A stretch of 64,000 nt of DNA from the NCBI GenBank assembly GCA_977020255.1, contig CDROCS010003917.1:62001-126000 (forward strand), given 5' to 3'. Source of the stretch: Obrimoposthia wandeli (taxonomy: Eukaryota). Shown one piece after another: positions 1 to 16,031 of this stretch (within the stretch, counting starts at the first letter, position 1; every line of letters starts with the position of its first letter). Position numbers and translations under genes: made by a program. Below the pieces are notes generated by a model. The model did not search any database, was not told the DNA's origin, and saw only the letters and a list, made by a program, of their open reading frames with translations.

Positions 1-777
1 TTTAAAGGGCATGCCTACGATCCTCACTGGCACGATACTTATTTGCTAGGTTTTACAGAGCAGGGTGTGCAACAATTTAACTGTCGTCGCAAGCTTTGTA
101 CTTCCATGGCTGGTGGAAACTTTTTAATTGAACCCGGCGAAATCCACGATGGCCGTGCGCCTGAAAATGACGGCTTTACTTATAGACAGTTGTATATCCC
201 AGCACCTTGGCTTAAGCATGAAATGGCGAGTTTATTTCCTGAACTGCCAGATACCTTGCAACTATCCAGTGCCGCCACTTTAATTGAAGATAAGCGTCTA
301 ACGAGTGCTATCGCCGCGGCTTTTATGGCTTTGCAGCAAGGTGAATCAGCCATTGTACGTGAGGCCTGCTTAGATCAATTACTGGCTTGTTTGACAGCAG
401 TTTTGAAGTTACAACAGTTGCATGATAATTCCCACAAAATATCAGTGTTAGCGCGCCAAGCGCGCTCTTTTTTACACGCTAACCTTGAATGCGATATCAA
501 TTTAGAACAATTAGCCAAACAGTTAAACACCGATAGGTTTCGTATCACGAGAGCCTTTAAGCAAGCTTATAATATTGCCCCGCATGCCTATTTAATCCAA
601 TTACGCCTTAGTCGAGCAAGGCAGCTATTGAGTGGGGGAGCAGTGCCTGCAGAAGTGGCCGCAAAGCTATGTTTTGCCGATCAAAGTCACTTAGGGCGCT
701 GGTTTCGCCGTGCTTATCGATTAACTCCAGCACAGTATGCAAAATGCTGTACAAATCTTCCAGACAGGCAGTTTTAA
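1..777 (+). CDS. AraC-family transcriptional regulator (5'-truncated by window edge)
   Basis: Frame open from base 1 (FKGHAYDPHWHDTY, cupin-like N-terminus); C-terminal AraC HTH signature FADQSHLGRWFRRAYRLTP. Confidence 0.92.
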   Translation, partial: FKGHAYDPHWHDTYLLGFTEQGVQQFNCRRKLCTSMAGGNFLIEPGEIHDGRAPENDGFTYRQLYIPAPWLKHEMASLFPELPDTLQLSSAATLIEDKRLTSAIAAAFMALQQGESAIVREACLDQLLACLTAVLKLQQLHDNSHKISVLARQARSFLHANLECDINLEQLAKQLNTDRFRITRAFKQAYNIAPHAYLIQLRLSRARQLLSGGAVPAEVAAKLCFADQSHLGRWFRRAYRLTPAQYAKCCTNLPDRQF

Positions 778-823
778 GCGCCACATAATAACTTCCCATC
801 AAACCACATTTTACCATTAAACA

Positions 824-1444
824 ATGGAAGCTATTATGTTAAGCCTATATCTGAGTTTTACACTTTTTGCCCTACTTGCTTCAATCACTCCAGGGCCCAC
901 CAATATTCTTGCGCTAAGCAATGGTAGTAGGGTGGGAGTCAGTGCAACCGTTCCTTTTGCGATAGGTGCAGCAGGCGCTACTGCGTTTATATTGTTTTTA
1001 GCAGCCACAGGATTGGCCAAAGTATTCATTAACTACCCGCAGTTTAAACAAGTGACAGCGCTATTTGGAGCACTTTGGCTCAGTTATATCGCTTGGTGTT
1101 TGTACAAAACAGCGGCATTAAATGCTGCATACTTGCAGCAGCAACTCAATTGGCGACAAGGTGCAGGGATGCAATTCATCAATCCTAAAAGTTGGATGAT
1201 GGCAATCACAGCTACCAGTTTATTTAGTAGCGAAGCGCTCAGCTTATATCAACACAGTGCGCTGTTGGCACTCATTTTCTTTTTAGTAACGTGTCCCTGC
1301 ATTGCTTGCTGGGCAGCACTAGGGAAATTGATACACTCCCAAACCACCCATAAAAGATCACAGCAGTATTTAAACCGGGTGCTTGCGATCGTGTTATTCG
1401 CTACCGTTTGGTGGCTTTACTATAGCGTTGTTTTTTCAATGTAA
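824..1444 (+). CDS. LysE/RhtB-family amino-acid exporter
   Basis: ITPGPTN and INPKSW motifs, hydrophobic 206 aa, follows the AraC regulator. Confidence 0.9.
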   Translation: MEAIMLSLYLSFTLFALLASITPGPTNILALSNGSRVGVSATVPFAIGAAGATAFILFLAATGLAKVFINYPQFKQVTALFGALWLSYIAWCLYKTAALNAAYLQQQLNWRQGAGMQFINPKSWMMAITATSLFSSEALSLYQHSALLALIFFLVTCPCIACWAALGKLIHSQTTHKRSQQYLNRVLAIVLFATVWWLYYSVVFSM

Positions 1445-2326
1445 ATTGAGAGTAATAAAGTCAATAAGTGAGCGCACCCGCGCACTTTGGTGCTGACGAC
1501 TCGCGTAAACGACATAAATGTCCACTGATTCATTATCATACTGCGTCAGTATTTTTTGCAGATTTCCGGTTTTAATATGCTCATGAACAATAAATTCAGG
1601 AACGCGGGTAATACCTAAGTTATCTAAAGCAAAGCCTAGTTGAATTTCACCATTATTAGTGGTGAAATTCGAGTCAACTTCTACATTATATTTTTGACCA
1701 TCCTTAGAAAAGCGCCAGTTATTTTTATTAGCAGCGTAGGCGTAGCAAATACAATTATGCTTTGCAAGCTGTTGAGGATGGATGATTTTTTCATATTGCT
1801 CAAGATATTGGGGGGAAGCGACAGTAACAATATTTGAAGTGGCCACCTTACGAGCAATCAAACTAGAATCTTCCATTTTAGCGGTGATGCGAATCGCGAG
1901 ATCGAAACCTTCACTGACTAAATCGACCTTGCGATCCGATAAATCTAAATCCAACTTCACTTTCGGATAGTGCACCAAGTATTGGTTGAGCAAAGCGCGT
2001 AACGCGTTGATTGTATAATTTAAGGGCGCGCTAATGCGTAAGGTGCCAGATGGCTCCATTGTTTGAGTAAATGCTTCAGCTTGCTGGGCATCCTGTATTA
2101 GTTTAGTACAGTGCTGATAGTAGAGTTCGCCATCAGCGGTCAGACTTATAGAGCGAGTAGTGCGATTCAATAAACGGCTATTTAAGCGCGCCTCTAATTT
2201 GCTCACTGTTTTACTGATATAAGAAGTAGAGCGATCAGTGGCAATGGCAGCCGCACTGAAACTACTATGCTCTACTACCGCGCAAAAAATGACGATACCA
2301 TCGAATAAATGATCATTAGTAGTCAT
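1436..2326 (-). CDS. LysR-family regulator (CrgA-like)
   Basis: N-terminal HTH (SFSAAA...VSKLEARL...LLNRTTR) and DLVSEGFDLAIR; ATG at 2326 chosen; divergent from azoR. Confidence 0.92.
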   Translation of the reverse strand: MTTNDHLFDGIVIFCAVVEHSSFSAAAIATDRSTSYISKTVSKLEARLNSRLLNRTTRSISLTADGELYYQHCTKLIQDAQQAEAFTQTMEPSGTLRISAPLNYTINALRALLNQYLVHYPKVKLDLDLSDRKVDLVSEGFDLAIRITAKMEDSSLIARKVATSNIVTVASPQYLEQYEKIIHPQQLAKHNCICYAYAANKNNWRFSKDGQKYNVEVDSNFTTNNGEIQLGFALDNLGITRVPEFIVHEHIKTGNLQKILTQYDNESVDIYVVYASRQHQSARVRSLIDFITLNLH

Positions 2327-2456
2327 ATGGAAATAATCCTTTATCAATTGCAGTATTAATTCATATATATGAATAATGTATGCTGTCTCTCTAAATAGCA
2401 AACAATACTCGTGAGATTGTTTTGAGTATTTCTTAACGTTTTAAAAGAGAGAAATA

Positions 2457-3077
2457 ATGAATATATTACAAATAAACTCAAGTCCAATGGGCGAAAACTC
2501 AGTTTCAAAAGGTTTAACCACTCGTTTTGTAGAACAACTAACAGAGCGTTTATACACGGCAAAATTGACAAGTAGAGATTTAGCCGATACCAACGTACCA
2601 CTTTTAACTGCAGCGACAGTTGGCGCGTTTTATACACCTGGAGAAGCATTATCTGATGATCAAAAAGCGCTAATTTCGTTATCCGATGAGCTGGTTGCAG
2701 AGTTAGAAGCAGCAAAGGTCATTGTCATTGGTGCCCCTATGCACAACTTTAGTGTGAGTGGACAGTTGAAAACTTACATCGATCAAGTCGCGCGTGTAGG
2801 GCGTACTTTTCAATACACTGAAAATGGCCCACAAGGATTATTAAAGGATAAAAAAGTATTTGTTATGGTCACGTCGGGCGGCGACTATACTAGCGGCCCA
2901 CTAGCATCATTGGATCATTTAACACCTTACATAACTACAATGTTAGGTTTCATCGGTATAACAGATGTTACTTTTATCCAATGCCCAAGTATGGCGGCGA
3001 ATGAGGAAACCAAAGCAAGTTCAATTGCAGCGGCGAATGAACAGATTGCTCAGGCAGTAGCGCAGCTTACTGTTTAA
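2457..3077 (+). CDS. azoR: FMN-dependent NADH:quinone/azoreductase
   Basis: INSSP, PMHNFSVSGQLKTYIDQVARVGRTFQYTENGPQGLL, FIGITDV. Confidence 0.93.
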   Translation: MNILQINSSPMGENSVSKGLTTRFVEQLTERLYTAKLTSRDLADTNVPLLTAATVGAFYTPGEALSDDQKALISLSDELVAELEAAKVIVIGAPMHNFSVSGQLKTYIDQVARVGRTFQYTENGPQGLLKDKKVFVMVTSGGDYTSGPLASLDHLTPYITTMLGFIGITDVTFIQCPSMAANEETKASSIAAANEQIAQAVAQLTV

Positions 3078-3088
3078 GAAAGTGCTAG

Positions 3089-3116
3089 ATTGTAGTGCTA
3101 AAAATAGCACTACAAT
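3089..3116. terminator. Probable bidirectional intrinsic terminator
   Basis: Perfect 12-bp stem attgtagtgcta-aaaa-tagcactacaat between convergent genes. Confidence 0.7.
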
Positions 3117-3194
3117 GGAACACCGCTACTTCAATCTATTACTAATTTAAACACCCGTTTCGCCTTGGGTTTAGATCTGAAGTTAGGTTTGAGC

Positions 3195-4184
3195 TTAAGT
3201 AATTGCATCAATAAATCGTGCAGGGCTAATATTTCGACCAGAGATAACGATTGCTACTTTCTTCGCGCCAATTGCTTGAAAATCGGTATGTAACAGACCG
3301 GCTAATGCACTCGCGCTAGCGCCTTCCATCATTTGCCCCTCGGCCTCAAATAAAAGTTGCATCGCAGGGCGCAAGCTCTCTTCAGAAACCAGCAACGCTT
3401 GATCCATGAAGCCGCGAACAATGGGGAAAGTATATTGATTATCCAAACCGATACTGCCGCCCATTGCATCCGCTAAACTTGGAGGCTCATCAACCGTCAC
3501 AGGCTTTCCTGCATTTAAGCTTTTCACCATGCCCGGTTCAATTTCCATCGAGATGCCTATTACTTTTATCGTAGGGGAAATCGCTTTTGCGGCGAGTGCT
3601 ATACCTGATAATAGTCCCCCGCCTGAAAGCGGCGCAACAATAGTGTCAATATCTGGGTTCTCATTCAAGATATCTAGTGCAATAGTGCCTTGCCCTGTAA
3701 TTACCTCTAAATCATCAAAAGGCGCAATTACGGTAAGGCCTTGCTCAGCAACTAATAGATCCGCATACGCTTGAGCATCATCTTGTGTTTTACCTATCAC
3801 CCGTAAATCAGCGCCATACTGGCGAATCGCTGCGCGCTTATTATCAGGCACCAACTCGCTCACACAAATAATCGCTTCAATACCCATCATCTTCGCAATA
3901 TAGGCTACTGCTCGGCCATGGTTTCCGCTGGAAACGGCAATTACACCCCGTTGTTTTTGGGCGTTACTGAGTTGCAACATGCGATTTGAAGCCCCGCGCA
4001 GCTTAAAGCTGCCGGTGGTTTGCAAGTTTTCAAGTTTTAGCCAAACCTCACAGTTCGCCAGTTTGGAAATAGCCTCACTATAGATCAGTGGGGTAGGGCG
4101 AATAATAGAATCGATACGTTTGCGTGCTTGCATAACACTTTGCAGTGAAAGGTATTGATTTGGTGAAGTTGCGGTGCTTTGCAT
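3195..4184 (-). CDS. eutB: PLP-dependent threonine/serine dehydratase, EutB (hydroxyectoine-utilisation) like
   Basis: LKLENLQTTGSFKLRGA, SSGNHG, GKTQDDAQ, LSGGGL and GGSIGLDNQYTF resemble the EutB subfamily. Confidence 0.75.
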   Translation of the reverse strand: MQSTATSPNQYLSLQSVMQARKRIDSIIRPTPLIYSEAISKLANCEVWLKLENLQTTGSFKLRGASNRMLQLSNAQKQRGVIAVSSGNHGRAVAYIAKMMGIEAIICVSELVPDNKRAAIRQYGADLRVIGKTQDDAQAYADLLVAEQGLTVIAPFDDLEVITGQGTIALDILNENPDIDTIVAPLSGGGLLSGIALAAKAISPTIKVIGISMEIEPGMVKSLNAGKPVTVDEPPSLADAMGGSIGLDNQYTFPIVRGFMDQALLVSEESLRPAMQLLFEAEGQMMEGASASALAGLLHTDFQAIGAKKVAIVISGRNISPARFIDAIT

Positions 4185-4210
4185 ATAAACCTCTAAATTT
4201 TTTTTCAAAT

Positions 4211-5152
4211 TTAATCAAATATTTTGGAAAAATCAGCAGCACTAATTTGCCGAACATTATCAGCCAGCTTTGTCATCGCAAGATGATGTTCTGACATTTC
4301 AGGAGTTGGATTAACATAATGATAATTTTGGTGACGCCAAAATGCAGTGGCCGTGGCGGCATACACTGTAAAAGCTTGCAACGCGGCCATTTCATTATCC
4401 TGTAGTTGTATTTTTTGCTGGTACCCTTGCAGTAAGCTAGTAGCTTTAGTGAGTGATAATTGCTGATTGTGGCAGCAGCAACCTATTAGCATCATCCCTA
4501 TGTCAAAAATCCGGTAGTAGTAACTGGCTTCTTCAAAATCCATGATGGTCGCTTGTTGGGTAGCTGTATCGATAATGATATTATCAGCAAAAATATCACT
4601 GTGGATCAGTGCTTTCGGTAAATCATTGCTCACAAAACTATCGATGTAAGCTGCGCACACTTGCAGCCAGTGATTAAAAGCAGAATCAGCTGCATATTGG
4701 TTAACAAGGCCAAAATTTTGCCTGCCAAAGCCCACCACATTGGGCAGGTAATTAGGTGCTTGAATAGAATGTAAATTGCCAAGGTTGTTACCTAATCCCG
4801 GTAACAGTGAACTGCTAATATCTTGCAGAATAACGCCGCTAATAAAGGTTTTTACAATCACCGGTTTATCACACCAAAGGCTGGTTTTTCGACCATCTAA
4901 GGTTTTAACAGCACCAGAGGTAGCAAAGTGATGGGCTTGTAAATAATCCAATAAATTAGCGAGCTGGGCGCATTCATCGATACTTTTTTGCTCACATATC
5001 GTCAGTACATATTCAGCCGTGTCGGTTTTTACCCAAAAATTAGTGTTTTCGGAACCGCCACTGAGTAATTTAAAAGCTGCTACAGGGGAAACATCGTAAG
5101 CTGTAAAAATTTGTTGAACCTGCTGCTTATCTAATTGGTTATTAAATATCAT
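4211..5152 (-). CDS. thrB: Homoserine kinase type II (APH/choline-kinase fold)
   Basis: GGSENTNF, IHSDIFADN, IMDFEEA; ATG overlaps thrC stop (TAATG). Confidence 0.8.
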   Translation of the reverse strand: MIFNNQLDKQQVQQIFTAYDVSPVAAFKLLSGGSENTNFWVKTDTAEYVLTICEQKSIDECAQLANLLDYLQAHHFATSGAVKTLDGRKTSLWCDKPVIVKTFISGVILQDISSSLLPGLGNNLGNLHSIQAPNYLPNVVGFGRQNFGLVNQYAADSAFNHWLQVCAAYIDSFVSNDLPKALIHSDIFADNIIIDTATQQATIMDFEEASYYYRIFDIGMMLIGCCCHNQQLSLTKATSLLQGYQQKIQLQDNEMAALQAFTVYAATATAFWRHQNYHYVNPTPEMSEHHLAMTKLADNVRQISAADFSKIFD

Positions 5153-6600
5153 TATCCTTTTGTTAACTCCCAATTGGTTAGCATTGCACTGCGCAGTGCA
5201 GGCTCTAATATCTCGTATTCACATAGGTGCACTTTTTGGCAGAATTTTTTCGCGCTCTCTATACTAGGATGAGTAGCCGCTTCGGGTAACTGATCCAGCT
5301 TAAGTGCCTGTTTTATGATTAGCGGAAATTTTGCAGGGTGAGCGGTCGCTAAACAAATAGTTTTTTCAGCCCCCAGTACTGCTTTTAAAGTATCGCAAGC
5401 TTGTAAGCTAACAGCGCCATGGGGGTCTAGTAAGTAATCTTCATTACAATAAATTTCATTCATCAGTGCTAGCGTTTGCGCATCACTAGCACTGTTAGAT
5501 AAAAAGCCCTGTTGATAACGAGTCTGTACGTCTTCACTAAAGGTTACTTTTCCAGTTGCTTGAAATTCATCCATCCACGCTTTAATACTTTGAGTGTCAG
5601 CGTCTAATTTGAAATATAAATAGCGCCAAAAATTGAAGGGGATCAATATATCAATAGCAGAGGAAACGGTTGAAATTAATGGCTGTTTTGAAAAATCACC
5701 CTTGGAGAAAACACGATCTAAGCAGCCGTTTTCATTACTGGCTGCCACTAGATTCTTCAGAGGTAGCCCCATTTCTCTAGCTAATGCGCCCGCACATAAA
5801 TTACCGAAGCCACCCGATGGCACAGAAATATTTATAGATTCACCTATTTCATCTACCACTTGGAAATAACCATAGAAATAGTGCACGGTTTGCATCATCA
5901 CTCGACCCCAGTTGATCGAATTTACACTGGATAACTTTAGGGTTTCTTTGAACTCTTTATCTGCGTAAAGGTTGCTTATTACAGCATCTAAATCATCTCC
6001 ACCATTAGGGCAATCTGTTACGGCAAAAGGATGAATATTTGGTTGTTGTAGGCTGGTCATTTGGCGTTCTTGCTCAGGCGTAATGAGCTCTTTAGGGTAA
6101 AGTACCCAAGCGTCTAAATTAGATTTCCCGGCACAAAAATGTGCAGTTGCAGGGCCTGTGTCACCAGTAGTGGCGACAATCAGCGATAAATGTTGGTTTT
6201 TTCTTGAGAGGAAATAGTTAACTAAATTCACTAAAAAGGCTAAACCAATATCTTTAAACGAAATGGTAGGGCCATGGAATAATTCCATGATATACGTTTC
6301 ATCCCTACTTTGTAGTTTATGCAGTGGAATAATATCCTCTTTTTCAAAAGGTGCATAAGCCGTAGCAAGTACTTCTTTTAATTCAGCAGCCGACAAAATA
6401 GTGCGATCAATAAAGAGCGATAGTATCTCAAAAGCCAAATCCACATAGCTTAAGTTTTTCCATTGCTCAAGTTGCAAAGCAGTAATGGTAGGGAGTGTTT
6501 CAGGCACATATAAACCACCATCACAGGCAAACCCATCGAGAATAGCTGTTTCGAAATCTACGGCGGGGCTACCGCCTTTGTTACTGACATATTTAAGCAT
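5152..6600 (-). CDS. thrC: Threonine synthase family PLP enzyme
   Basis: DGGLYVPE, ELFHGPTISFKDIG (PLP lysine), TGDTG, NSINWGR, ATAHPAKF. Confidence 0.9.
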   Translation of the reverse strand: MLKYVSNKGGSPAVDFETAILDGFACDGGLYVPETLPTITALQLEQWKNLSYVDLAFEILSLFIDRTILSAAELKEVLATAYAPFEKEDIIPLHKLQSRDETYIMELFHGPTISFKDIGLAFLVNLVNYFLSRKNQHLSLIVATTGDTGPATAHFCAGKSNLDAWVLYPKELITPEQERQMTSLQQPNIHPFAVTDCPNGGDDLDAVISNLYADKEFKETLKLSSVNSINWGRVMMQTVHYFYGYFQVVDEIGESINISVPSGGFGNLCAGALAREMGLPLKNLVAASNENGCLDRVFSKGDFSKQPLISTVSSAIDILIPFNFWRYLYFKLDADTQSIKAWMDEFQATGKVTFSEDVQTRYQQGFLSNSASDAQTLALMNEIYCNEDYLLDPHGAVSLQACDTLKAVLGAEKTICLATAHPAKFPLIIKQALKLDQLPEAATHPSIESAKKFCQKVHLCEYEILEPALRSAMLTNWELTKG

Positions 6601-6683
6601 TTGTATAAATCCAGGTGATGATTAGTCGCAATGAAATAAAGTTTTACAAGCAAATTATAAAGACTATTTTGAAACGCTTATTC

Positions 6684-7634
6684 TCAAATAGCGCTGCAAT
6701 AATCAAATACAGCACTGGCGATCATCAAATCTTGCACGGCCACTCCAGTAAGATCAGCAACGGTAATTTGATCCTCATGACTACGCTGATATTTAGGCGA
6801 TTGAAGAGCGGTGCCTAATTCGATCACTTTATCTGCGGTGATAGCCTTTTGACGTAGCGCTTGGAATACTTCACCGCGGCTTTGCCCTTGTGGAATACTA
6901 TCAACAATCACTAGGTCGGCTTTGGCTAGAATACTACTTGCTAACTCTTGTTTTACTTCAGTATCAGAACCCACCGCTGTGATATGCGTGCCCGCTTGAA
7001 TATCACAAGCTTGAAGTAGTACTGATTCGCTCGGTGTAGTGGTAACAATAAGGTTGGCATTGGCTGCCACCTCTTGGGGACTGCTGGCAACATGGATTTC
7101 AAAATCAGCGTCTAGCTCTCGGGCAAAATCAGCACAGCGCTGGGCATTACGTCCCCATAACCAGACTGTTTTACACGGCGTGTGTTGTTGTAAATGAAGT
7201 AACTGTAATTTTGCTTGGATACCACAACCAATGATGCCAATTGCTTTGATATTCTTTGGAGCTAAGTATTTGGCAGCAACAGCGCCAGCCGCCGCGGTAC
7301 GAATATCAGTAAGAAAGCCTTCATCGAGCAATACCGCTTTAGGTACGCCTGTTTTTTGATCAAATAACAACATTAAACCTTGGCTAGAAGAAATGCCTTG
7401 CTGTGGGTTGTCATAAAAACCAGAAGCTATTTTAACCACGTAGTAGTCATCATTTTTAATATAGCCATATTTAATATGTACATCACCTTTAGGTTTATCA
7501 AACAACAGCTCACCAACAGGGGGCACGACACTATTACCATTACTGTATTGAATAAAGCCATGCTCCATGGCCGCCACTAAATCGATATTCTTAACTGATG
7601 CTTTGATTTGATCCAAATTAATGATGCTGGTCAC
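6684..7634 (-). CDS. Ornithine cyclodeaminase / mu-crystallin family protein
   Basis: LTDIRTAAAGAVAAKYLA, GCGIQA, GTHITAVGSD, DLTGVAVQD. Confidence 0.9.
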   Translation of the reverse strand: MTSIINLDQIKASVKNIDLVAAMEHGFIQYSNGNSVVPPVGELLFDKPKGDVHIKYGYIKNDDYYVVKIASGFYDNPQQGISSSQGLMLLFDQKTGVPKAVLLDEGFLTDIRTAAAGAVAAKYLAPKNIKAIGIIGCGIQAKLQLLHLQQHTPCKTVWLWGRNAQRCADFARELDADFEIHVASSPQEVAANANLIVTTTPSESVLLQACDIQAGTHITAVGSDTEVKQELASSILAKADLVIVDSIPQGQSRGEVFQALRQKAITADKVIELGTALQSPKYQRSHEDQITVADLTGVAVQDLMIASAVFDYCSAI

Positions 7635-7982
7635 GCTATTTCTCCTGCTATTGGGGGCAATAGATAATTCAGTGCTGTACTTTGAATGATTAAAACAATG
7701 ACTAAAATTATAGTTAAAATTTATGCATTAGAGCAGGAGCTAACAAAGGAAATTGATAACAAAAAACGCAGATACTAATGTATTTCATTGTATATATCTT
7801 AGTTTCTATCGTTTCGAATTTGATGAGCGTTTACTTATGCACAGCCCGACACTAATTTTTCAGTCGCTGCGCATAAACTGGGTTTTTCTAGAGTTTTGCA
7901 AGCTATTGATCAGTTCGTTCTCATCCTGAAACGGGGGGCGGGGCTGCGGGTGTGCGAGGCTGCGAGGCTGAGCTAATAGTTC

Positions 7983-8047
7983 GAGATGGGCAGCACTAGA
8001 TGTCGGCGTTTGGTTGTTTTAAATAACGACATCTAGTGGTGATTAGG
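7983..8047. repeat. Dispersed hairpin element, copy A
   Basis: 12-bp perfect stem cactagatgtcg (7994-8005) / cgacatctagtg (8027-8038); aligns with 24999-25060. Confidence 0.65.
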
Positions 8048-8094
8048 TCGAGGGAGTACAACAGCCGTAGTAAACATTTGTTTGTGGATGGAAA

Positions 8095-8910
8095 CTAGTT
8101 AGCACAATCACGCAGTAACATGGCCGCCAACTCTTTATATATTTTGGCACATACCATGGCTGTCATTTCATTGATATCGCAGTTTGGATTGTATTCAACA
8201 ATATCAGCACCAACCACAGGTAAATCAATTTTACTGAGCACTTGCAAAACTTCCCTTACACTCAATCCGCCGGGTTCAAAATGAGAGACACCGGGAGCAA
8301 AGGCCGGGTCCAATGCATCCAAATCAAAGGATATATACAGTGGACCTGTGAGGTTTAAAGGTGTATCCACTTGCCAGTTTTTCATTTCATGTATTTCAAC
8401 ATCAAACTTATCAGCTTGCGCAGCTTGGTGTTTGTTAAGAGTACGTATACCAACTTGCACTAAGCGCGCAGCAAACTTGCCTTCCATGATTCTCGCGAAA
8501 GGGCAGGCGTGGCTGTATCTATTACCGCCTAGATTATCATACAAATCAGGGTGAGCATCAAAGTGCAATATAGTCAGGTTGTCGTGCTGTTTCGCCAGCG
8601 CTTTGATAACGGGGAAGGTGATGGAATGGTCGCCTCCTAAGGTTAATATTTTACTGCCATTAGCGGCGAGTTCTGTGCACTTTTGCTCGATATTTGCAAA
8701 AGCTTGCGCCTCTTCGTTCCAAGTAACAGTGCCTGCATCTTCCACTCTTGCATCTTTAGCTACATCAATACCTGATTCGCTGGTGGTATTAGCAGAGCCA
8801 TTCATTAGTACTTGACGTATTAGAGGGGGAGCTTGGGCGGGACCGCGTAAATGAGATGAGTTAAAGTCTAAAGGGATTTCAAGAATTGAAACCTTACTGT
8901 ATTGTTTCAT
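8095..8910 (-). CDS. Ureohydrolase (agmatinase/arginase family)
   Basis: Metal motifs GGDHSIT, HFDAHPD, SFDLDALDPAFAPG; substrate not assignable from sequence. Confidence 0.9.
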   Translation of the reverse strand: MKQYSKVSILEIPLDFNSSHLRGPAQAPPLIRQVLMNGSANTTSESGIDVAKDARVEDAGTVTWNEEAQAFANIEQKCTELAANGSKILTLGGDHSITFPVIKALAKQHDNLTILHFDAHPDLYDNLGGNRYSHACPFARIMEGKFAARLVQVGIRTLNKHQAAQADKFDVEIHEMKNWQVDTPLNLTGPLYISFDLDALDPAFAPGVSHFEPGGLSVREVLQVLSKIDLPVVGADIVEYNPNCDINEMTAMVCAKIYKELAAMLLRDCAN

Positions 8911-9210
8911 TATTTTTCTCCTAAAATTAAGGGCGAATATTTATGAATCGTAACGAATTGCCCGATTAAATCATTTAAAAAGACTGGTGTCCGCTTTAAT
9001 TTTGTTGTTCTTTAACTCATTGATTTTACGTTAACGACAAATGTTATTTTGCTAACATATATAGAATTAACCAAGATAGAAGTCCACACATCAATGAGTT
9101 CAAAGACTTGCATTATTTAATAGGGACCAATTATTTTTCACCTAATGACAATTTGTTATATAACTGTCACATCTTTTGTTTAAATTAGACTAAACGTTCT
9201 ACAGGAAAAA

Positions 9211-9873
9211 ATGATGAAGCCAGCGCAACCTAAATATATCTTCGAAGCTCAAGAAAAGCCTTCTCTAAAAACTTACCAAGTGCCTTTGATTGTTGCCAAT
9301 GAACAAACGGTTAAAGGTTACGGCTGTTTAGTAGACGATCCCAGCAATTTTGAGATAGAAATTGTGCAATGGCCCGCGCAAGGTTGGCGCGAAGTTGATA
9401 ACAATACCGGTAATGAAGGCGGTTTTGTTGAGGGTGTGTTTCATGGGCAATGGCAAGGCGATATATTGCGTGGGCGCAACGAAGCAGTGAACGGAAATTA
9501 CGTGCTAGGTTGGAGTACCGATCCGCAAAAAGCGAGTAACAAACTGCAAACAGTGCCTCGAGAGCAAGTGCTTCTTTGGCACATGAACTACCACCCAGAT
9601 GGCGGGCAAATGTTTTTCCCACTGGATAAAAAACCTTTTGTAGTACCTGTAGCAATGCCAGGAGATGATTTAGCGCCAGAAAAAGTGATCGCTTTTTGGT
9701 GTGATGGTAGTAAGGGGCTTTATATACACCCAAATATTTGGCACGAAGGCATTTTCCCGGTTGAAGATGAGCAACGCTTTTTAGATCGCCAAGGAAAAGT
9801 ACACGCCAGAGTTAGTGCAGATATAGGTAAAGAATTTGGTGTGTATCTGAGTGTGCCATTGTATTTAAAGTAA
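9211..9873 (+). CDS. Ureidoglycolate lyase-like cupin protein
   Basis: NYHPDGGQMFFP and YIHPNIWHEG resemble the AllA-like family. Confidence 0.65.
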   Translation: MMKPAQPKYIFEAQEKPSLKTYQVPLIVANEQTVKGYGCLVDDPSNFEIEIVQWPAQGWREVDNNTGNEGGFVEGVFHGQWQGDILRGRNEAVNGNYVLGWSTDPQKASNKLQTVPREQVLLWHMNYHPDGGQMFFPLDKKPFVVPVAMPGDDLAPEKVIAFWCDGSKGLYIHPNIWHEGIFPVEDEQRFLDRQGKVHARVSADIGKEFGVYLSVPLYLK

Positions 9874-9945
9874 TGAGTGAGGTCTTTGCATAAGGTATTG
9901 AGTACCGCCGTTATGCAAAAATCTTTCATGAATGTGGGGTTGAAA

Positions 9946-10235
9946 TTATGCTAAAGCAAACTCCACTGCGGCTTGTGCATGTAGCGCAGTAGTATCATAC
10001 AAAGATATCTCAGTGTGGTTTTTCTGCACCAATAGAGCGATCTCGGTGCAGCCCAAAATAATAGCTTGTGCGCCTTCTTGTGCAAGTTGATCTATAGCCG
10101 CAAGATAAATATTCCTTGAGCTCGCGTTGATCTCCCCACTGCATCGTTCAGTGTAGATGATGTGATGGATTTGTGCACGGGTATTGCTATTAGGCACTAA
10201 AACTTCAATACCGTGATTTTGCGTTAAACGTCGCA
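9946..10235 (-). pseudogene. 3' fragment of an Asp/Glu racemase paralogue
   Basis: Aligns without gaps by eye to the 3' end of 14123-14815 (GAQAIILGCTEIALLV...YDTTALHAQAAVEFAL); N-terminal ~135 aa absent. Confidence 0.88.
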
Positions 10236-10279
10236 GGTGAAATTTAGCGGTAAAGGAAAAAGGGTTGCTCAATTGATTA

Positions 10280-10752
10280 GCGCCGCTTCACTTTTATCCG
10301 CAAAGAAGATTACAAATCATTGGTCTTTATGACGAATGATTTAACCCGTTCAGCGGTAGAGGTTGCGGCATTATATAAGCAGCGTTGGGAGATAGAATTG
10401 TTCTGTAAATGGATAAAATAAAATGTGAAGATCAAGCGCTTTATAAGTCAAAATGAAAACGGCGTGATGATCCAAGCCTTGATCGCTCTCATCGCATATT
10501 TGCTTTTAAAAATAAAACACTTAACTGATTTATGTGATCAAACACTCTATCAAATCCGCTTACTGTTTAGTACAAATTTAATGGATCGAAGGCGTATAAT
10601 GGCGTTGCTCAACTCTATTGTTAAGGCCAATTGTTAAGCTCTATATTGTTAAGGCCAATTGTTAAGCCCTAGTGTCAAGCCATTAAAACCCGACAAGAAT
10701 GGCGTGGCATAAATGAATTTTGAGCTGTTAAATACTTAACCGAACACTAGTG
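10280..10752 (+). mobile_element. IS4-family transposase remnant with right terminal repeat
   Basis: LVFMTN...YKQRWEIELFCKWIK*NVKIKRF (YREK motif, in-frame TAA); terminal-like cttaaccgaacactagtg at 10735-10752; 24-nt direct repeat at 10616-10639 and 10644-10667. Confidence 0.85.
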
Positions 10753-10872
10753 ACTCAACTTATTCTTTTGCACCAGCAATACCCATAATTAGGGGCACAC
10801 TGATTCCGCTAAATCGACTGTTTTTGCCTTATCCTATCTGCATTCGCTATGGTATGCAGAGGTCTCCTCATA

Positions 10873-12222
10873 CTAAAACCAGTTATCTTTGACTTTACCG
10901 TATTGGAAAAAACCCCATTGCCCTACGCGCCTTAAAGGTGCAAAAGGAAATTTAGGTAAGGCCTTTTGATACAAAGGCAGGTTGGGCGTCTCTTTACCTG
11001 CTACTTTTTGTGCGAGTCGTTTTCCAGCTTGTACCGAAAATGAGACACCGCTGCCACAATAACCCATTGAATAAAACACACTGTGTTGCTCATCTTGATA
11101 GATGTGAGGTAGGTCATCAAGGGACATGCTCAGCCAGCCTGACCAAGAATAATCATATTTAATATCTGCTAACGCCGGGAAGTTAGTTTTTAATACTGCG
11201 AGTAAGCGTTGAGAAAAGTAAGGGTCTTGTGATCCTTTGCCAGTAATCGCACCACGCCCACCAAACAAGATTCTATTATCAGGTAGTTTACGGTAATAAT
11301 ATTTTAATGCCCGTGTATCCATGATGACATTGCTGGTTAAAAAATTACAGGCTGCAAGTTGGCTAGGCGATAACGGCTCGGTCACAATCACTTGGGATAA
11401 AACAGGTAAGGTTCTATTTTTGATTAAAGTGTGCAAACCTTTAGGTGTATAACCATTGGTGGCAATAATCACTTTCTTTGCCTTCACAATACCCTTAGGT
11501 GTATGTAGCATTTGCCTCGTTTGTTTGCCTTTTCCTTCTACCAGCCAGTTTTCTACCGGGCTAGCGCAATGAATTTTTACCCCTTCTTGGCGAACTAAAC
11601 GCTGATAACCCCAAGCTAGTTTCAATGGATTGAGACCAAATCCATCTTGGTAGCGTATTGCACCATAAGCATTTTGGTCCGCCATATATTGCTGATGTAA
11701 ATCTTGTCTTGATAATACTTGTACATCATAACCAAACATTTCTTGCTGTAGCTTTGCCGCAGCTACTAGCTCGTCAAGCATGCTAGGTTTATGTGCTACT
11801 CGGATGTAACCAGCATCTTGTCGATCACAAGATATGCCTTCATCTATCAGGCTTTTAACAGTATCGACGCCTTCGCACATTTCATTATAAATGCCTCGCA
11901 TCACCTCCTCACCCCACTGTTTTTTCATTGCAGCGTAAGATTTTCTCCCTGAGGATTTTAAAATAAAACCACCGTTACGACCGCTAGCTCCCCACGCACT
12001 TTGGTTGGCCTCTAACACTGTGGCTTTAATACCATGTTCGCGCGCTAAATGCAGTGCACAGGACAAACCAGTATAACCGGCGCCTATAATAGCAACGTCT
12101 ACCTCTATATCTTGTTTTAGTTGACCATCATGTTCAGGTGGGCTACCTGCAACATCAGCCCAGTAACTAGCAGGGTACTTTTCATCGCAACCTGGCGATT
12201 TATCATGTAAAGGATCGTACAT
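10873..12222 (-). CDS. FAD-dependent oxidoreductase (DAO / PuuB-like)
   Basis: IIGAGYTGL, GASGRNGG, IATNGY, GYCGSGV. Confidence 0.88.
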   Translation of the reverse strand: MYDPLHDKSPGCDEKYPASYWADVAGSPPEHDGQLKQDIEVDVAIIGAGYTGLSCALHLAREHGIKATVLEANQSAWGASGRNGGFILKSSGRKSYAAMKKQWGEEVMRGIYNEMCEGVDTVKSLIDEGISCDRQDAGYIRVAHKPSMLDELVAAAKLQQEMFGYDVQVLSRQDLHQQYMADQNAYGAIRYQDGFGLNPLKLAWGYQRLVRQEGVKIHCASPVENWLVEGKGKQTRQMLHTPKGIVKAKKVIIATNGYTPKGLHTLIKNRTLPVLSQVIVTEPLSPSQLAACNFLTSNVIMDTRALKYYYRKLPDNRILFGGRGAITGKGSQDPYFSQRLLAVLKTNFPALADIKYDYSWSGWLSMSLDDLPHIYQDEQHSVFYSMGYCGSGVSFSVQAGKRLAQKVAGKETPNLPLYQKALPKFPFAPLRRVGQWGFFQYGKVKDNWF

Positions 12223-12235
12223 TTTATTGTCCTTA

Positions 12236-13249
12236 TTAATTTTCAACTAAAGTTAACCAATCACCATCACAGACATTTAAGGCGTGAGCGACTTCGGCTG
12301 TGATTAATGCATACTGTGTGGTTAATTTTACATTTATTTGCGCAGCCCTAAACTCAGACAATTTGTGATTACAGGCTAGATATTGCGTCTGATTACTTTC
12401 TATATCAGTTATTTTTATTTGTTTAGTTTCACTTGCTATCACTGTTTTAATTTTGTTAAGAGGACATGTGACTGCGGGGCCTGCATCATTAACTCCTATA
12501 TAGTCACCGTATTTAAAACCTTCTTTTTCTAATAAAACCAGTGCAGGTAAAGTATCGGTGTGTACCTGATTAATAGCATCTTGCGCGCTTTGCGACATGA
12601 GGCGGGTGTACAGCGGGTACTTAGGCATTAGTTCACTAGCAAACCTCATATCCCCTATACCGATACAGTGGTTTGAGGTAGCAAAGCTAATGTTGCAAAA
12701 GTGTTGTTCAAACCAAGACCAAAAAGGTGACTGGTTATGCTGATCAGCATAGCCACGCATTTCTGCCATAATGTTCTTTGAAAAGCGTTGTTGGTGGGCC
12801 GCCATAAATAAAAATCGAAAGCGTGACAAGGTACGGCCATTACGATTAATACGGTAGCTATCTTTTAGATACAAAGAGCAAATTTCTGTGCTGGCAATTA
12901 AGTCTGTGCACAAGGTCAATGTTTGATGCGTTTTACTTAGCCCAAGGGAATCAGAGTGATGTACACAGGACTCGATTCGATGATGATACAAGGGCGTAGT
13001 TTGCCCAACAGATGCCTCAATACCGCTGGTACCGACAACTTCACCACTGGCCAAATCTTGCATCACAAACAGATAACCCTGCTCTCCCGGGGTTGTGATG
13101 TGTGCATTAAAAGAGCGTAACGAGTGTTTAATTCGTTCTTTGAGAGTTTGAGGGTCATCGGGAAAGGAGGTTAACCCGTTACCTGAGTGTATAGCTATTT
13201 GATGCAAGGCATCAAAGTCATCTAGTGAAATAGGACGAATAATTATCAT
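12236..13249 (-). CDS. Arginine N-succinyltransferase (AstA) family, divergent paralogue
   Basis: IIIRPI...GLTSFP, EICSLYL, LSRFRFLF, AEMRG, SPFW, ELMPKYPLY. Confidence 0.85.
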   Translation of the reverse strand: MIIIRPISLDDFDALHQIAIHSGNGLTSFPDDPQTLKERIKHSLRSFNAHITTPGEQGYLFVMQDLASGEVVGTSGIEASVGQTTPLYHHRIESCVHHSDSLGLSKTHQTLTLCTDLIASTEICSLYLKDSYRINRNGRTLSRFRFLFMAAHQQRFSKNIMAEMRGYADQHNQSPFWSWFEQHFCNISFATSNHCIGIGDMRFASELMPKYPLYTRLMSQSAQDAINQVHTDTLPALVLLEKEGFKYGDYIGVNDAGPAVTCPLNKIKTVIASETKQIKITDIESNQTQYLACNHKLSEFRAAQINVKLTTQYALITAEVAHALNVCDGDWLTLVEN

Positions 13250-13441
13250 GAAACCTCATCATTTGACGGTTTTATCGCTGTAACTAACACAGATACTACA
13301 TACACTGTCGTATCAAATGTTGATGTTTAATAATACTTACTATTATCATGTAAAAAGTTGTCATATTTAAGTGGCAAAATTATCAATTTAAACAGCTTTT
13401 TTTAACAAAATGATAAATTATAAGAAAAAAGGGGGTCATTA

Positions 13442-13870
13442 ATGATCACGCAAGCAGAAGAAAAACTTCTCAAGGTTTTAAAAAAGGATGTTAGAGCAAG
13501 TATTTCGGACATTGCCCGAAAGCTCAAAATATCACGTGCGACAGTTCAAGTACGTATTGAAAAACTAGAGCGCACGGGTGTTATTAAAGGCTATACTTTA
13601 GAGCTGGGTGAGACCTATTTGAATAGCTTTATCGCCGCACATGTCTCCATTGCCACCCAACAAGATAAAGCACTACTCGTTAGAGCCAATTTGTTAAAAA
13701 CTCACAATATTACTGAGGTCCTCTCCATTAGTGGAGAGTATGATCTTATCGGGGTAATCAAAACTAAATCTTTAGAAAATCTTGACCTTACTCTATCTGA
13801 AATTGCGTCAATCGATGGTGTGTTACGTACTAAGTCTTCGGTAATACTGGCAACTAGATATGCTGACTAA
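13442..13870 (+). CDS. Lrp/AsnC-family regulator
   Basis: RASISDIARKLKISRATVQVRIEKLERTGVIKGY; ISGEYDL. Confidence 0.92.
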   Translation: MITQAEEKLLKVLKKDVRASISDIARKLKISRATVQVRIEKLERTGVIKGYTLELGETYLNSFIAAHVSIATQQDKALLVRANLLKTHNITEVLSISGEYDLIGVIKTKSLENLDLTLSEIASIDGVLRTKSSVILATRYAD

Positions 13871-14122
13871 CTTCTCTTGAGGTTAGCCTATCGAAAAAAA
13901 GATTGTGGCGCAAAGTTTACACATTAAGGCCTAAGTACAAAAGCGGTATAAAACAGCCATGGAATACATTGAAATATTTGATGTTCAGATAAAAATTTTT
14001 TATTATTCTAAATAAAATCACTTGTTTTGCATTGAACCGCAAACCTTTTGTAATGTCATTCATTTCTAAAAGACGCTAGTTCAGCAAAAGGTTATTCGTG
14101 TCAGCAAAAAATGTATTAATAA

Positions 14123-14815
14123 TTATTTTAAAGCAAACTCCACCGCAGCTTGAGCATGTAGCGCAGTAGTATCATATAAAGGTATGTCAGTATGGCTTTG
14201 TTGCACTAGTAAAGCGATCTCGGTACAGCCCAAAATGATAGCTTGGGCGCCTTGTTGCGCTAGTTGCTCTATAGCTGCAAGATAAACATCTCTTGAAATG
14301 GTGTTGATTTCCCCTTTACACAGTTCAGTGTAAATGATGTGATGGACTTGTGCACGGGTATCAGTATCGGGTATTAAAACCTCAATGCCATATTTTTGCG
14401 TTAAGCGCTGCTTATAAAAATCTTGCTCCATAGTGAAAGCGGTGCCAAGCAAGCCTACTTTAGTTATTTTATCAGCAATTAAGCACTGCGCGGTCGCATC
14501 GGCTATATGCAGTAACGGGATGTTGATCACTTGCTCGATTTGATCGGCAACCTTGTGCATGGTATTGGTGCAAATCAGTAAACAATCAGCGCCACCATCT
14601 GCAACTGATTTTGCACAAGCAGTTAAAATGTCTGCTGTACCTTGCCAATCACCGCTATGCTGTAACGCTTCTATCTGTGCGAAATCAACACTATTAAGCA
14701 CAACTTTAGCACTGTGTAAGCCACCTAAATGAGCATTAACACCTTTGTTAATCAGCTGATAATAGCTAACCGTTGATTCCCAGCTCATGCCGCCTAATAA
14801 ACCAATTGTTTTCAT
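14123..14815 (-). CDS. Aspartate/glutamate racemase family (YgeA/RacX-like)
   Basis: MKTIGLLGGMSWEST, ICTNTMH, LGCTEI (two catalytic Cys). Confidence 0.93.
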   Translation of the reverse strand: MKTIGLLGGMSWESTVSYYQLINKGVNAHLGGLHSAKVVLNSVDFAQIEALQHSGDWQGTADILTACAKSVADGGADCLLICTNTMHKVADQIEQVINIPLLHIADATAQCLIADKITKVGLLGTAFTMEQDFYKQRLTQKYGIEVLIPDTDTRAQVHHIIYTELCKGEINTISRDVYLAAIEQLAQQGAQAIILGCTEIALLVQQSHTDIPLYDTTALHAQAAVEFALK

Positions 14816-14825
14816 AAAAACCTCT

Positions 14826-16031
14826 TTATTGGGTAGCTACATGCACATTGTTTGCAGCACGTTGCCAGCGGTGAATAATTAATAAAATAAGCCCGGGTAG
14901 CAGTAACGACATCGCCAGCCAATTGCTATTTTCCCAGCCGATATGTTGAAATAAGAAGCCTGCTGACAAAGCACCAATGGTGTTTAACACTGCAACCGCT
15001 GATTCATTAACACCCTGCATTTTATGAGCATCGCCATGTAGAGTTGCAACAAGGGAGCTGCCACCCACATACAGCATGTTCCAGCCCAAACCCACGCCAA
15101 TAAGTGCAATTAAAATGCCGGTGTAACTCACCATATAAATAGCCACTAGCATCGCGCTAAACATAGTGACGTAGCCTGCCAGTATTACTTTTTCAACGCC
15201 TATCATAGAAATGATACGGCCCATAAACAGTGAGGGTAAAAACATCGCGGCGACATGATATTGAATAACTATCATAATATCTGCAAAAGGTACGCCCATC
15301 TCATTCATTTTCAAAGACGACTGCATCATCAATAATGCCATTAGCATGTAACCAAAACCAGAGGCATAAATAGCAACGATTAATGCGAAAGGCAAGCGCT
15401 TGTTCGAGTCGTTAGCAGTGCTTGTAGGGGTGGGTTGATCAATTTTAATTTCATTGCCCGATGCTTGAGACAGGTTGTTTTTAGGTATCATTAGCAATAT
15501 AAGCATTACCAATACAGCCAAAATGGTAAAGCTTAGATAACTGGCACTAAAGCTGAAATCTTCAATTAATAAGCGGCTACTTTGCGCAATTTTGGGGCCG
15601 ATAAAAGCCGCGGCAATCCCCCCTAAAGTGACATAAGAGATGGCCTTCGCTTTCTGCTTATCGTCTAGCCCGTCAGTGGCCGCAAAGCGAAAGTAAGCAA
15701 AGGCGCTAATAGTTACGCCAAGCAAGGCATGGCCGAGTAAATTGAGCGTGAACGAATGCAAGTAAATCGATAAAGCACCTAGCAATCCACCTAAGGCTAA
15801 AGTAATAGCGCCTAAAAAGAATACCGGGCGACGGCCAAAGCGTTTCATCGACATCGATAATATATAAGAGCAGGCGATGACCGAGGCAAATTGTGCGCCG
15901 TATGGCAAGGTCGATAATTCTGGATATGGCGCTAAGCTTTTCCCGACAATCGGTGAAATAGACACCCCAATCACGGCACTAGTTAGCGATAGTGCTTGGG
16001 CTAAAGAGTATAAAAATGTTTGTTTGCGCAT
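14826..16031 (-). CDS. MFS transporter
   Basis: About 12 hydrophobic segments, MKRFGRRPVF loop, FRFAATD, QYHVAAMFLPS. Confidence 0.88.
   Translation of the reverse strand: MRKQTFLYSLAQALSLTSAVIGVSISPIVGKSLAPYPELSTLPYGAQFASVIACSYILSMSMKRFGRRPVFFLGAITLALGGLLGALSIYLHSFTLNLLGHALLGVTISAFAYFRFAATDGLDDKQKAKAISYVTLGGIAAAFIGPKIAQSSRLLIEDFSFSASYLSFTILAVLVMLILLMIPKNNLSQASGNEIKIDQPTPTSTANDSNKRLPFALIVAIYASGFGYMLMALLMMQSSLKMNEMGVPFADIMIVIQYHVAAMFLPSLFMGRIISMIGVEKVILAGYVTMFSAMLVAIYMVSYTGILIALIGVGLGWNMLYVGGSSLVATLHGDAHKMQGVNESAVAVLNTIGALSAGFLFQHIGWENSNWLAMSLLLPGLILLIIHRWQRAANNVHVATQ

Follow-up and report, generated by a model that had tools for sequence, protein, structure and literature searches.

What is the function of genes that resemble those for ornithine cyclodeaminase (OCD), threonine synthase and homoserine kinase when they stand side by side, together with a dehydratase gene, on a contig that encodes no homoserine dehydrogenase? 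This question is raised by positions 3195-8910 of the window, by which we mean the whole stretch of 64,000 nucleotides analyzed here, covering positions 62001-126000 of contig CDROCS010003917.1 (hereafter C3917; assembly GCA_977020255.1, Obrimoposthia wandeli); coordinates of features in this stretch are given below as window positions. An earlier note on this DNA had read the genes as an operon that degrades homoserine, or another hydroxy-amino acid, rather than making threonine. As described in the following, the operon does not serve housekeeping threonine synthesis, and we see about an even chance that it is a horizontally mobile module for the catabolism or salvage of a hydroxylated alpha-amino acid, in which a kinase, a phospho-lyase related to the animal protein THNSL2 and an imine reductase would cooperate. 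Thus, the catabolic character, the likeness to THNSL2 and the separation from the housekeeping genes have stood, and the roles that the earlier note gave to the OCD-family enzyme and to a ureohydrolase feeding in canavanine are probably wrong or unproven.

The locus consists of five intact open reading frames (ORFs), all co-directional on the minus strand. Behind the ureohydrolase gene, which is treated further below, the operon begins with the gene for an NAD(P)-dependent enzyme of the OCD/mu-crystallin family (7634-6684; GTG start, 316 residues; PF02423, 1.4e-61), followed by the genes for a ThrC-like enzyme dependent on pyridoxal phosphate (PLP) (6600-5152; 482 residues with Thr_synth_N, PALP and THR4_C domains) and for an APH-fold small-molecule kinase (5152-4211; 313 residues; PF01636, 7.5e-23), and it ends with the gene for an EutB-like, fold-type II PLP enzyme (4184-3195; 329 residues), the PALP dehydratase of this locus. 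The successive intergenic gaps, starting from the ureohydrolase gene, measure 460, 83, -1 and 26 nucleotides, so that the coordinates, strand and spacings reported in the earlier note were all recovered from the ORFs. The ATG of the kinase shares one base with the stop codon of the ThrC-like gene (TAATG), through which the kinase is translationally coupled to it, and a plausible ribosome-binding site precedes each of the five starts. Co-transcription of the operon is predicted from the gene spacing and from synteny; promoter and terminator scans of the locus gave background level only, and no Rfam family or riboswitch was detected across 3000-10900. The catalytic motifs are present in the translations, namely SFKD with the PLP lysine in the ThrC-like protein, GIIGCGIQA in the OCD-family protein, SFKLRG in the PALP enzyme, GGDHS, DAHPD and DLDALDP in the ureohydrolase, and HSD..DN (IHSDIFADN) plus DFEE (MDFEE) in the kinase, the latter pair being the motifs of the APH fold.

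Does the organism depend on these genes for threonine? The source assembly (1.35 Gb in 6912 contigs, with at least 20 ThrC genes over the cut-off) is effectively a metagenome, and the nearest public relative of the window is the Oceanospirillaceae metagenome-assembled genome (MAG) 9NakV-11, whose ThrC-like protein is 97% identical and whose DNA is 86-89% identical, with full synteny save for a 3.9-kb insertion in the window. On contig C3914 of the same assembly we found a canonical pair of hom (90990-91526) and thrC (92102-93154; 277.6 bits), the ThrC being 97.6% identical to the housekeeping ThrC of 9NakV-11. Furthermore, contig C1089 carries a true type-II thrB (ThrB_alt, 273 bits against a cut-off of 255.9) in a locus whose DNA is 86.6% identical to the 9NakV-11 thrB locus, a divergence seen for the window too. 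Judged by these identities, the hom-thrC pair and the thrB_alt gene are assigned to the organism of the window. A separate ThrC scoring 267-305 bits was likewise present in 10/10 other carrier genomes tested, where the cluster copy reaches 208-219, and in 3/3 flavobacterial genomes checked it adjoins a GHMP-type thrB. The ThrC-like gene is therefore neither the sole copy nor the hom-linked one, as the threonine-forming enzyme of the organism would be, and the operon is not one for housekeeping threonine synthesis. The earlier note had conceded that its reading would fall if these were the only thrB and thrC of the genome; they are not, and the separate hom-thrC and thrB_alt genes support a catabolic-type unit. 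Its remark that hom and eutD/eutE are missing also holds as far as it was followed, since contig C3917 encodes neither homoserine dehydrogenase nor EutD/DoeA (EutE was not searched). In the complete genome of Zobellia laminariae AS94 (CP130738, 8001-10357 of locus L098), the ThrC-like gene is frameshifted near residue 157 and a TAA stop is reported inside the kinase, with the housekeeping thrB-thrC intact; the cluster seems to be decaying there.

If not a housekeeping threonine synthase, what is the ThrC-like protein? Against the threonine synthase model TIGR00260 it passes modestly (207, cut-off 167.1), below the housekeeping range given above. In a tree with 21 housekeeping ThrCs, the 76 sequences of the ThrC-like family are monophyletic on a long stem. 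The family keeps the PLP lysine K116 and 55 other positions that are invariant in ThrC (numbering of the window protein throughout), and it departs from the canonical invariant residues in all 76 members at F201 (G or A), Q205 (D), K209 (A or S), Y240 (H), N264 (A or G), M316 (I) and S322 (Y or F), with E325 replaced by W in addition; it lacks, in other words, these particular invariant residues of canonical ThrC. An exhaustive HMMER search of 1.84 billion representatives returned one sequence at 524 bits and the next at about 350, marking an isolated family. About one quarter of the next-ranked matches carry the same correlated residue signature, and those among them that could be placed taxonomically were all eukaryotic: a "threonine synthase-like protein" of Capsaspora, and proteins of Creolimax, a choanoflagellate, a diatom, Diplonema, an alga and a fish. 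The best homologues of the Capsaspora protein are animal THNSL2.

The resemblance to THNSL2, which the earlier note had pointed out, is confirmed by the tree. In an analysis that took in 14 non-human animal THNSL2 sequences, the human entry being left out, the family and THNSL2 form one clade of 122 tips (support 1.0) with no housekeeping ThrC inside, the immediate sister being a Creolimax protein (support 0.996). The signature S/G201, D205, H240, A/G264 and Y/F322 is common to the family and THNSL2 and absent from every canonical ThrC sampled, D205 alone occurring in 118 tips within the clade and in none outside. The window protein and THNSL2 also share the order of the Thr_synth_N, PALP and THR4_C domains and 35-37% identity. 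They differ in that the window protein is bacterial, that its gene shares an operon with the kinase, OCD and dehydratase genes, and that it has changes of its own: A/S in place of K209, W in place of E325, T in place of S145 and S in place of A114, plus a two-residue insertion at 197-198. By contrast, the DDLDAVI-type motif that had been quoted as the mark of THNSL2 is general to long ThrCs. We know of no physiological substrate or pathway for animal THNSL2. According to note c of PMC2748086, which cites Donini 2006, the murine protein has phospho-lyase activity. An activity of this kind, which turns a phospho-amino acid into a 2-oxo acid, phosphate and ammonia, has been demonstrated in vitro and is known in the clade for the murine enzyme only. 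On the strength of its clade and signature, the ThrC-like enzyme is predicted to be an O-phospho-hydroxy-amino-acid phospho-lyase acting by gamma-elimination.

The kinase was called a type II ThrB in the earlier note, an identity that the models do not bear out: it scores 103 against 255.9 for TIGR00938 and 134 against 271 for PRK05231. Its best match in the PDB is 2PPQ at only 57 bits, its homologues are labelled "phosphotransferase" or, automatically, "homoserine kinase type II", and a protein-atlas search returned only "homoserine kinase family". We therefore regard it, from these scores, as a relative of type-II homoserine kinase and not as an equivalog. Compared with the ThrB (type II)/ThrC pair, the two window enzymes have the same folds and would probably start with the same reaction, in which ATP is spent to phosphorylate a gamma-hydroxyl and the phosphate is then lost with the help of PLP. 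Unlike that pair, they are paralogues kept beside the housekeeping genes, with a kinase that fails the ThrB models, six canonical invariant residues of ThrC lost, and linkage to OCD and dehydratase genes but not to hom.

Another link between the two activities comes from eukaryotes. A 778-residue protein encoded on two eukaryotic metagenome contigs (L131 and L132, 8001-10337), which also encode DOCK-family and GST genes, consists of an APH kinase domain fused to a THNSL2-like domain. The fused kinase domain shares 28% identity with the window kinase (E = 1e-17); when this domain of the protist protein was used as the query, the proteins that matched bore no names. As read from its domains, the fusion provides an independent link of the Rosetta-stone type between the kinase and THNSL2-like activities. 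The HYKK/PHYKPL pair of animals offers a parallel, in that an APH-fold kinase first activates a hydroxyl group of the amino acid for removal by a PLP phospho-lyase. The animal lyase, however, is of fold type I, resembles class III aminotransferases and acts through the epsilon-amine, whereas the window lyase is of fold type II and keeps the alpha-carboxylate loop ATTGDTG. Because this loop is kept, a gamma-phospho alpha-amino acid is the expected substrate. 5-Hydroxylysine was considered as a direct substrate of the lyase and rejected by inference, the loop being kept and the hydroxyl of that compound standing delta to the alpha-amine.

The first and last genes of the operon can be understood together. 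The OCD-family protein lies below every NCBIfam cut-off (PRK06823, 393 against 438; EutC, TIGR02992, 250 against 471.65), and it does not match as an ornithine cyclodeaminase (EC 4.3.1.12): it reaches 124 of the 350 required by NF005762 and 65 bits with the Pseudomonas putida enzyme 1U7H, true cyclodeaminases in general giving only about 65-70 bits. Its best solved relatives are archaeal alanine dehydrogenase 1OMO (149 bits), the iminosuccinate reductase BhcD (6RQA, 116) and pyrroline-2-carboxylate (Pyr2C) reductase (6T3E, 114). Among 401 genomes of Pseudomonadota, its next-nearest relatives are 35-40% identical, and 10 of their 11 loci directly adjoin an EutB-like gene. We scored three such pairs: two of the OCD-family members reach 526-576 with EutC TIGR02992 and the third attains the cut-off of the PRK08291 cyclodeaminase model only, their EutB partners score 466-553, and the ectoine hydrolase gene eutD lies beside two of the pairs. 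The dehydratase of the window misses both EutB models, the first narrowly (NF005680, 407 against 413; TIGR02991, 362 against 413.35), and its best solved relatives are the catabolic threonine dehydratase 2GN0 (207 bits) and serine racemases. Since the next-nearest relatives of the OCD protein are EutC proteins encoded beside EutB, the first and last genes of the operon are to be seen as EutC and EutB paralogues. On these relationships the OCD-family protein is predicted to be a 2-imino-acid reductase and the EutB-like enzyme a beta-hydroxy-amino-acid dehydratase.

Two known pairs illustrate what such enzymes might do together. In the beta-hydroxyaspartate cycle, BhcB and BhcD dehydrate and then reduce beta-hydroxyaspartate, the PLP dehydratase making an imine that the OCD-family reductase turns into an amino acid; as mentioned, the OCD-family protein of the window counts BhcD (6RQA) among its best structural relatives. 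The window proteins nevertheless score far below the cut-offs for this pair (223 against 550 and 168 against 500), BhcA and BhcC are lacking, and hydroxyaspartate is an unlikely substrate here. EutB and EutC have been proposed, without biochemical proof, to act as a dehydratase and an NADH-dependent reductase (PMC5924519), which is the same logic of dehydrating a hydroxy compound before reduction with NADH; the window dehydratase and OCD protein are 45-50% and 35-40% identical, respectively, to bona fide EutB and EutC encoded side by side. The differences are that the window proteins fall below the cut-offs, that genes for a ThrC-like enzyme and a kinase lie between them, and that the contig has neither EutD nor an ectoine transporter (the EutE gene, again, was not searched). 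The earlier note had let the OCD-family enzyme release the hydroxy-amino acid, which is unlikely, as its relatives are EutC proteins beside EutB and the dehydratase occurs only where an OCD gene does; both facts fit the partner of an imine-forming enzyme, that is, an imine reductase.

How widespread is the arrangement? A scan of species-representative genomes yielded 79 loci, 75 of them with a member of the ThrC-like family, and partners were counted within 5 kb. The OCD gene accompanies the ThrC-like gene in 55/75 loci, the kinase in 57/75 and a PALP dehydratase in 25/75; the order OCD, ThrC-like, kinase is nearly constant (about 45 of the 75), and OCD is kept even in loci without the kinase. 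The arrangement is thus far from chance, its order recurring in several phyla, and the survey of neighbourhoods for which the earlier note had called showed conservation. Carriers belong to Flavobacteriia, Saprospiria, Cytophagia, Rhodothermales, Oceanospirillales and Desulfobacterales, and include Tenacibaculum, Aquimarina, Maribacter, Zobellia, Saprospiraceae, Cytophagales, Rhodothermales, Nitrincolaceae/Oceanospirillaceae, Marinomonas, Alteromonas, Desulfobacterales and the Osedax symbiont Rs2 (two copies); a kinase homologue is also found in the Osedax symbiont Rs1. No coherent neighbourhood was seen in the loci of one Saprospiraceae clade or in those of Desulfobacterales. The dehydratase is present in 25 of the 55 OCD-positive loci and in none of the 20 OCD-negative ones (Fisher p = 7e-5, uncorrected for phylogeny). 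Flavobacterial loci have another dehydratase, of the PRK06815 type and about 30% identical, upstream of OCD, so that dehydratases of two non-orthologous kinds have joined the unit, always in loci with OCD. Among the recurrent neighbours are M28 and M14 peptidases, an Xaa-Pro-dipeptidase-like amidohydrolase, Lrp/AsnC regulators and amino-acid transporters, which, by their annotation, lend the surroundings a catabolic and not a biosynthetic flavour. Oceanospirillales form one clade in the ThrC-like, OCD and kinase trees (supports 0.99, 0.88 and 0.77), nested among Bacteroidota in the ThrC-like and kinase trees, and this congruence of the three trees suggests that the unit moved as a block. Searches of the full-text literature found no description of this cluster, which brings enzymes of known kinds together in a combination that is new and widely distributed.

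Several variants deserve mention. Kinase-less loci occur as second copies in the Nitrincolaceae MAG DT_73 (L034) and in the Osedax symbiont Rs2 (L030) and also in a Marinomonas MAG (L095); in such variants an ABC transporter of the Lys/Arg/Orn type adjoins the OCD and ThrC-like genes (two loci were counted for this), and in L034 a GntC-like/VioD-like PLP enzyme follows them. The OCD and ThrC-like genes of an uncultured Tenacibaculum (L040, 5374-7976) are separated by inserted genes for a YfcC-type transporter and a reductive-dehalogenase-like Fe-S protein. A Desulfobacteraceae MAG (L096, 8001-13199) lacks OCD and has, in this order, genes for the ThrC-like enzyme, the kinase, a membrane protein (DUF819) and a PLP decarboxylase of group II; the kinase-lyase pair may be put to another use there. 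Additionally, contig C2737 of the same assembly (587-5086, L025) holds a second, diverged copy of the module from another organism, with 70% identity to the window for OCD, 71% for the ThrC-like protein, 50% for the kinase and 43% for a convergently oriented EutB-like gene.

These results gave rise to the following proposal, of which we infer every chemical step as well as the substrate. The APH-fold kinase would phosphorylate the gamma-hydroxyl of homoserine or of a gamma-hydroxy analogue, and the THNSL2-type PLP enzyme would eliminate the phosphate to leave an enamine and then a 2-imino acid. Where the EutB-like dehydratase is present, it would make the same kind of 2-imino acid from a beta-hydroxy isomer, which might be taken up directly or might be formed if the ThrC-like enzyme retains some synthase activity. 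The EutC-like OCD-family enzyme would finally use NAD(P)H to reduce the imine, yielding the L-amino acid stripped of its hydroxyl, following the logic of BhcB/BhcD and of the step proposed for EutB/EutC. Such a mechanism would give a role to all four conserved genes and would account for the faithfulness with which OCD, above the other partners, accompanies the lyase; the route would not have to pass through threonine, because the ThrC-like enzyme, if of the THNSL2 type, would be a phospho-lyase. In the broader sense, the route could be one of reductive de-hydroxylation, converting gamma- or beta-hydroxylated amino acids into ordinary ones at the expense of ATP and NAD(P)H with a set of enzymes that have animal counterparts, a generalization that we put forward as rather unlikely; candidate feeds would be, e.g., gamma-hydroxy-arginine, -ornithine and -lysine from marine animals and algae.

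As to the substrate, homoserine is a tentative choice, something else altogether deserves the same weight, and a basic gamma-hydroxy amino acid, e.g., gamma-hydroxy-arginine, -ornithine or -lysine, is possible if on the doubtful side. For the basic compound there are four independent hints from context, which, taken as annotated, would point to it weakly: the Lys/Arg/Orn-type ABC transporters at two kinase-less loci, the YfcC "basic amino acid antiporter" of flavobacterial loci, the ureohydrolase with its likeness to plant arginase (6VSU, 234 bits) together with an AstA-like succinyltransferase in the window, and the enzyme of L034 that resembles the gamma-hydroxyarginine cyclodehydratase GntC. 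A substrate with a cationic side chain would also be in keeping with two changes in the lyase, where K209 is gone and D205 has appeared.

Obviously, a number of observations weigh against the proposed module. Homoserine as the substrate would yield 2-aminobutyrate, a product of no obvious use, and this speaks for a substituted substrate instead; the hints to a basic one from transporters and arginase are themselves weak, below family cut-offs and restricted to lineages. The association between OCD and the dehydratase was computed without regard to phylogeny, about half of the loci with OCD lack a neighbouring dehydratase, and one Saprospiraceae clade carries the ThrC-like gene without OCD or dehydratase. 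Furthermore, the family departs from animal THNSL2 at the signature sites K209 (A/S), E325 (W) and S145 (T), owing to which the lyase activity is an extrapolation.

A simpler rival is that homoserine is degraded through threonine: the kinase would make O-phosphohomoserine, the ThrC-like enzyme would act as a genuine threonine synthase, the EutB-like enzyme would act as a threonine dehydratase releasing 2-oxobutyrate and ammonia, and the OCD enzyme would be upstream or accessory. We consider this improbable, by no means negligible. The ThrC-like protein does pass TIGR00260 with its PLP lysine and 56 ThrC-invariant positions kept, the nearest named family of the kinase is type-II ThrB, the dehydratase is closest to catabolic threonine dehydratase, and evolved Escherichia coli both detoxifies homoserine and puts it to use by way of conversion to threonine, which is then degraded (PMC9792984). 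What this route leaves without a role, however, is OCD, the most tightly linked partner (55/75 loci, also without the kinase); moreover, the ThrC-like protein falls in the THNSL2 phospho-lyase clade and has lost the canonical F201, Q205, K209, Y240, N264 and S322, the kinase is far under the ThrB cut-offs, and the dehydratase is missing from two thirds of all loci. A locus in which a ThrC-kinase pair lies beside kbl-tdh (L104) was set aside as support for a threonine route, its ThrC being of the housekeeping type in the tree.

Considerably less probable is the biosynthesis of a non-proteinogenic amino acid in the manner of SbnA/SbnB, where a PLP-dependent replacement on a phospho-amino acid would be followed by oxidation of the adduct by OCD, e.g., to a diamino acid for a siderophore or some other metabolite. 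Pairs of fold-type II PLP and OCD-family enzymes do make L-2,3-diaminopropionate (SbnA/SbnB, CmnB/CmnK), there are weak matches to SbnB (96 bits), SbnA (64 bits) and CmnK, and the Desulfobacteraceae locus adds a PLP decarboxylase. Yet the scores with the SbnA/SbnB models are far below the cut-offs, the OCD protein is closest to the catabolic EutC, and no genes for non-ribosomal peptide synthetases, siderophores or export recur nearby, the neighbours being peptidases, amino-acid importers and Lrp/AsnC regulators.

A variant of hydroxyectoine utilization, with the EutB- and EutC-like enzymes acting on intermediates derived from hydroxyectoine and the ThrC-like enzyme and kinase as add-ons, is less probable still. 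It can draw on the dehydratase, which almost attains the EutB cut-off (407/413), and on two genes upstream that are syntenic in the 9NakV-11 MAG, one for an Asp/Glu racemase (14123-14815, minus strand; the family is EutA-like) and one for a major facilitator superfamily (MFS) transporter (14826-16031, minus strand). Against this, contig C3917 lacks EutD/DoeA, the OCD protein is far under the EutC cut-off (250/471.65), flavobacterial loci use a different dehydratase without ectoine genes, and the transporters found are of the Lys/Arg/Orn type and not EhuB. Hydroxyectoine itself was accordingly rejected as the substrate, there being no EutD on the contig and no transporter of the Ehu type (EutE, as said, was outside the search). 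That the genes are redundant or condition-specific isozymes of threonine biosynthesis is scarcely credible: in its favour are the pass against the ThrC model and the likeness of the kinase to ThrB, but the canonical set is kept in every genome examined, the ThrC-like protein has a long stem and lies within the THNSL2 clade, the linkage is to OCD and dehydratase and not to hom or asd, and Zobellia laminariae AS94 has a frameshifted copy with its housekeeping genes retained.

Is the ureohydrolase part of the module? Its gene (8910-8095, minus strand; 271 residues, arginase/agmatinase fold; PF00491, 5e-67) lies beside the cluster only in the window and in the 9NakV-11 MAG, its closest relative, among the cluster loci compared. 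The protein passes the agmatinase model TIGR01230 (188, cut-off 174); agmatine is no more than a candidate substrate, however, because among solved structures the protein comes closest by far to plant arginases (6VSU, 234 bits; 6VSS, 215), guanidinobutyrase giving 112. The idea that this enzyme feeds the operon from canavanine is thus disfavoured, as the gene is not a conserved part of the unit and the enzyme is nearest to plant-type arginases. The gap of 460 nucleotides between the ureohydrolase and OCD genes contains a stem-loop 3' of the ureohydrolase stop (7975-8095, minus strand) with a perfect 12-bp stem (-24.1 kcal/mol, z = -3.96; 0/200 shuffles fold as well); it is without a T-run and was missed by the terminator scan. 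This hairpin is a possible terminator or an element like the repetitive extragenic palindromes, parting the ureohydrolase from the operon, and on its account the ureohydrolase is probably a transcription unit of its own and a lineage-specific neighbour. In the same A+T-rich spacer a G+C-rich block at 7933-7972 is made of about five tandem copies of an 8-nucleotide unit, GGCTGCGN (plus strand).

Divergent to the ureohydrolase gene, and syntenic in the 9NakV-11 MAG, is a gene for a cupin of 220 residues (9211-9873, plus strand) that weakly resembles ureidoglycolate lyase. The 3.9-kb block missing from that MAG spans 10230-14121 and holds genes for a flavin adenine dinucleotide (FAD) oxidase resembling pipecolate oxidase (10873-12246), an AstA-like arginine/ornithine N-succinyltransferase (12236-13249; TIGR03243, 381 against 284) and a divergent Lrp/AsnC regulator (13442-13870). 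By its gene content it looks like an inserted catabolic unit of the arginine type.

The annotations "threonine synthase", "homoserine kinase" and "ornithine cyclodeaminase" are probably wrong for the genes of this cluster, and such labels can mask real gaps or create false redundancy in reconstructions of the threonine pathway. The proposed module would add a route of catabolism or salvage to abundant marine heterotrophs and symbionts (Flavobacteriaceae, Saprospiraceae, Nitrincolaceae, Osedax symbionts). Bacterial members of the THNSL2 clade occur in a conserved operon with a dedicated kinase, a partner of the imine-reductase type and often a dehydratase, and this context makes the function of the orphan animal enzyme THNSL2 directly testable. 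Animals have counterparts in a THNSL2-type lyase, a reductase of the mu-crystallin family and a PLP enzyme of the serine-racemase/dehydratase type, so that reductive de-hydroxylation, if true, could indicate the physiological job of animal THNSL2.

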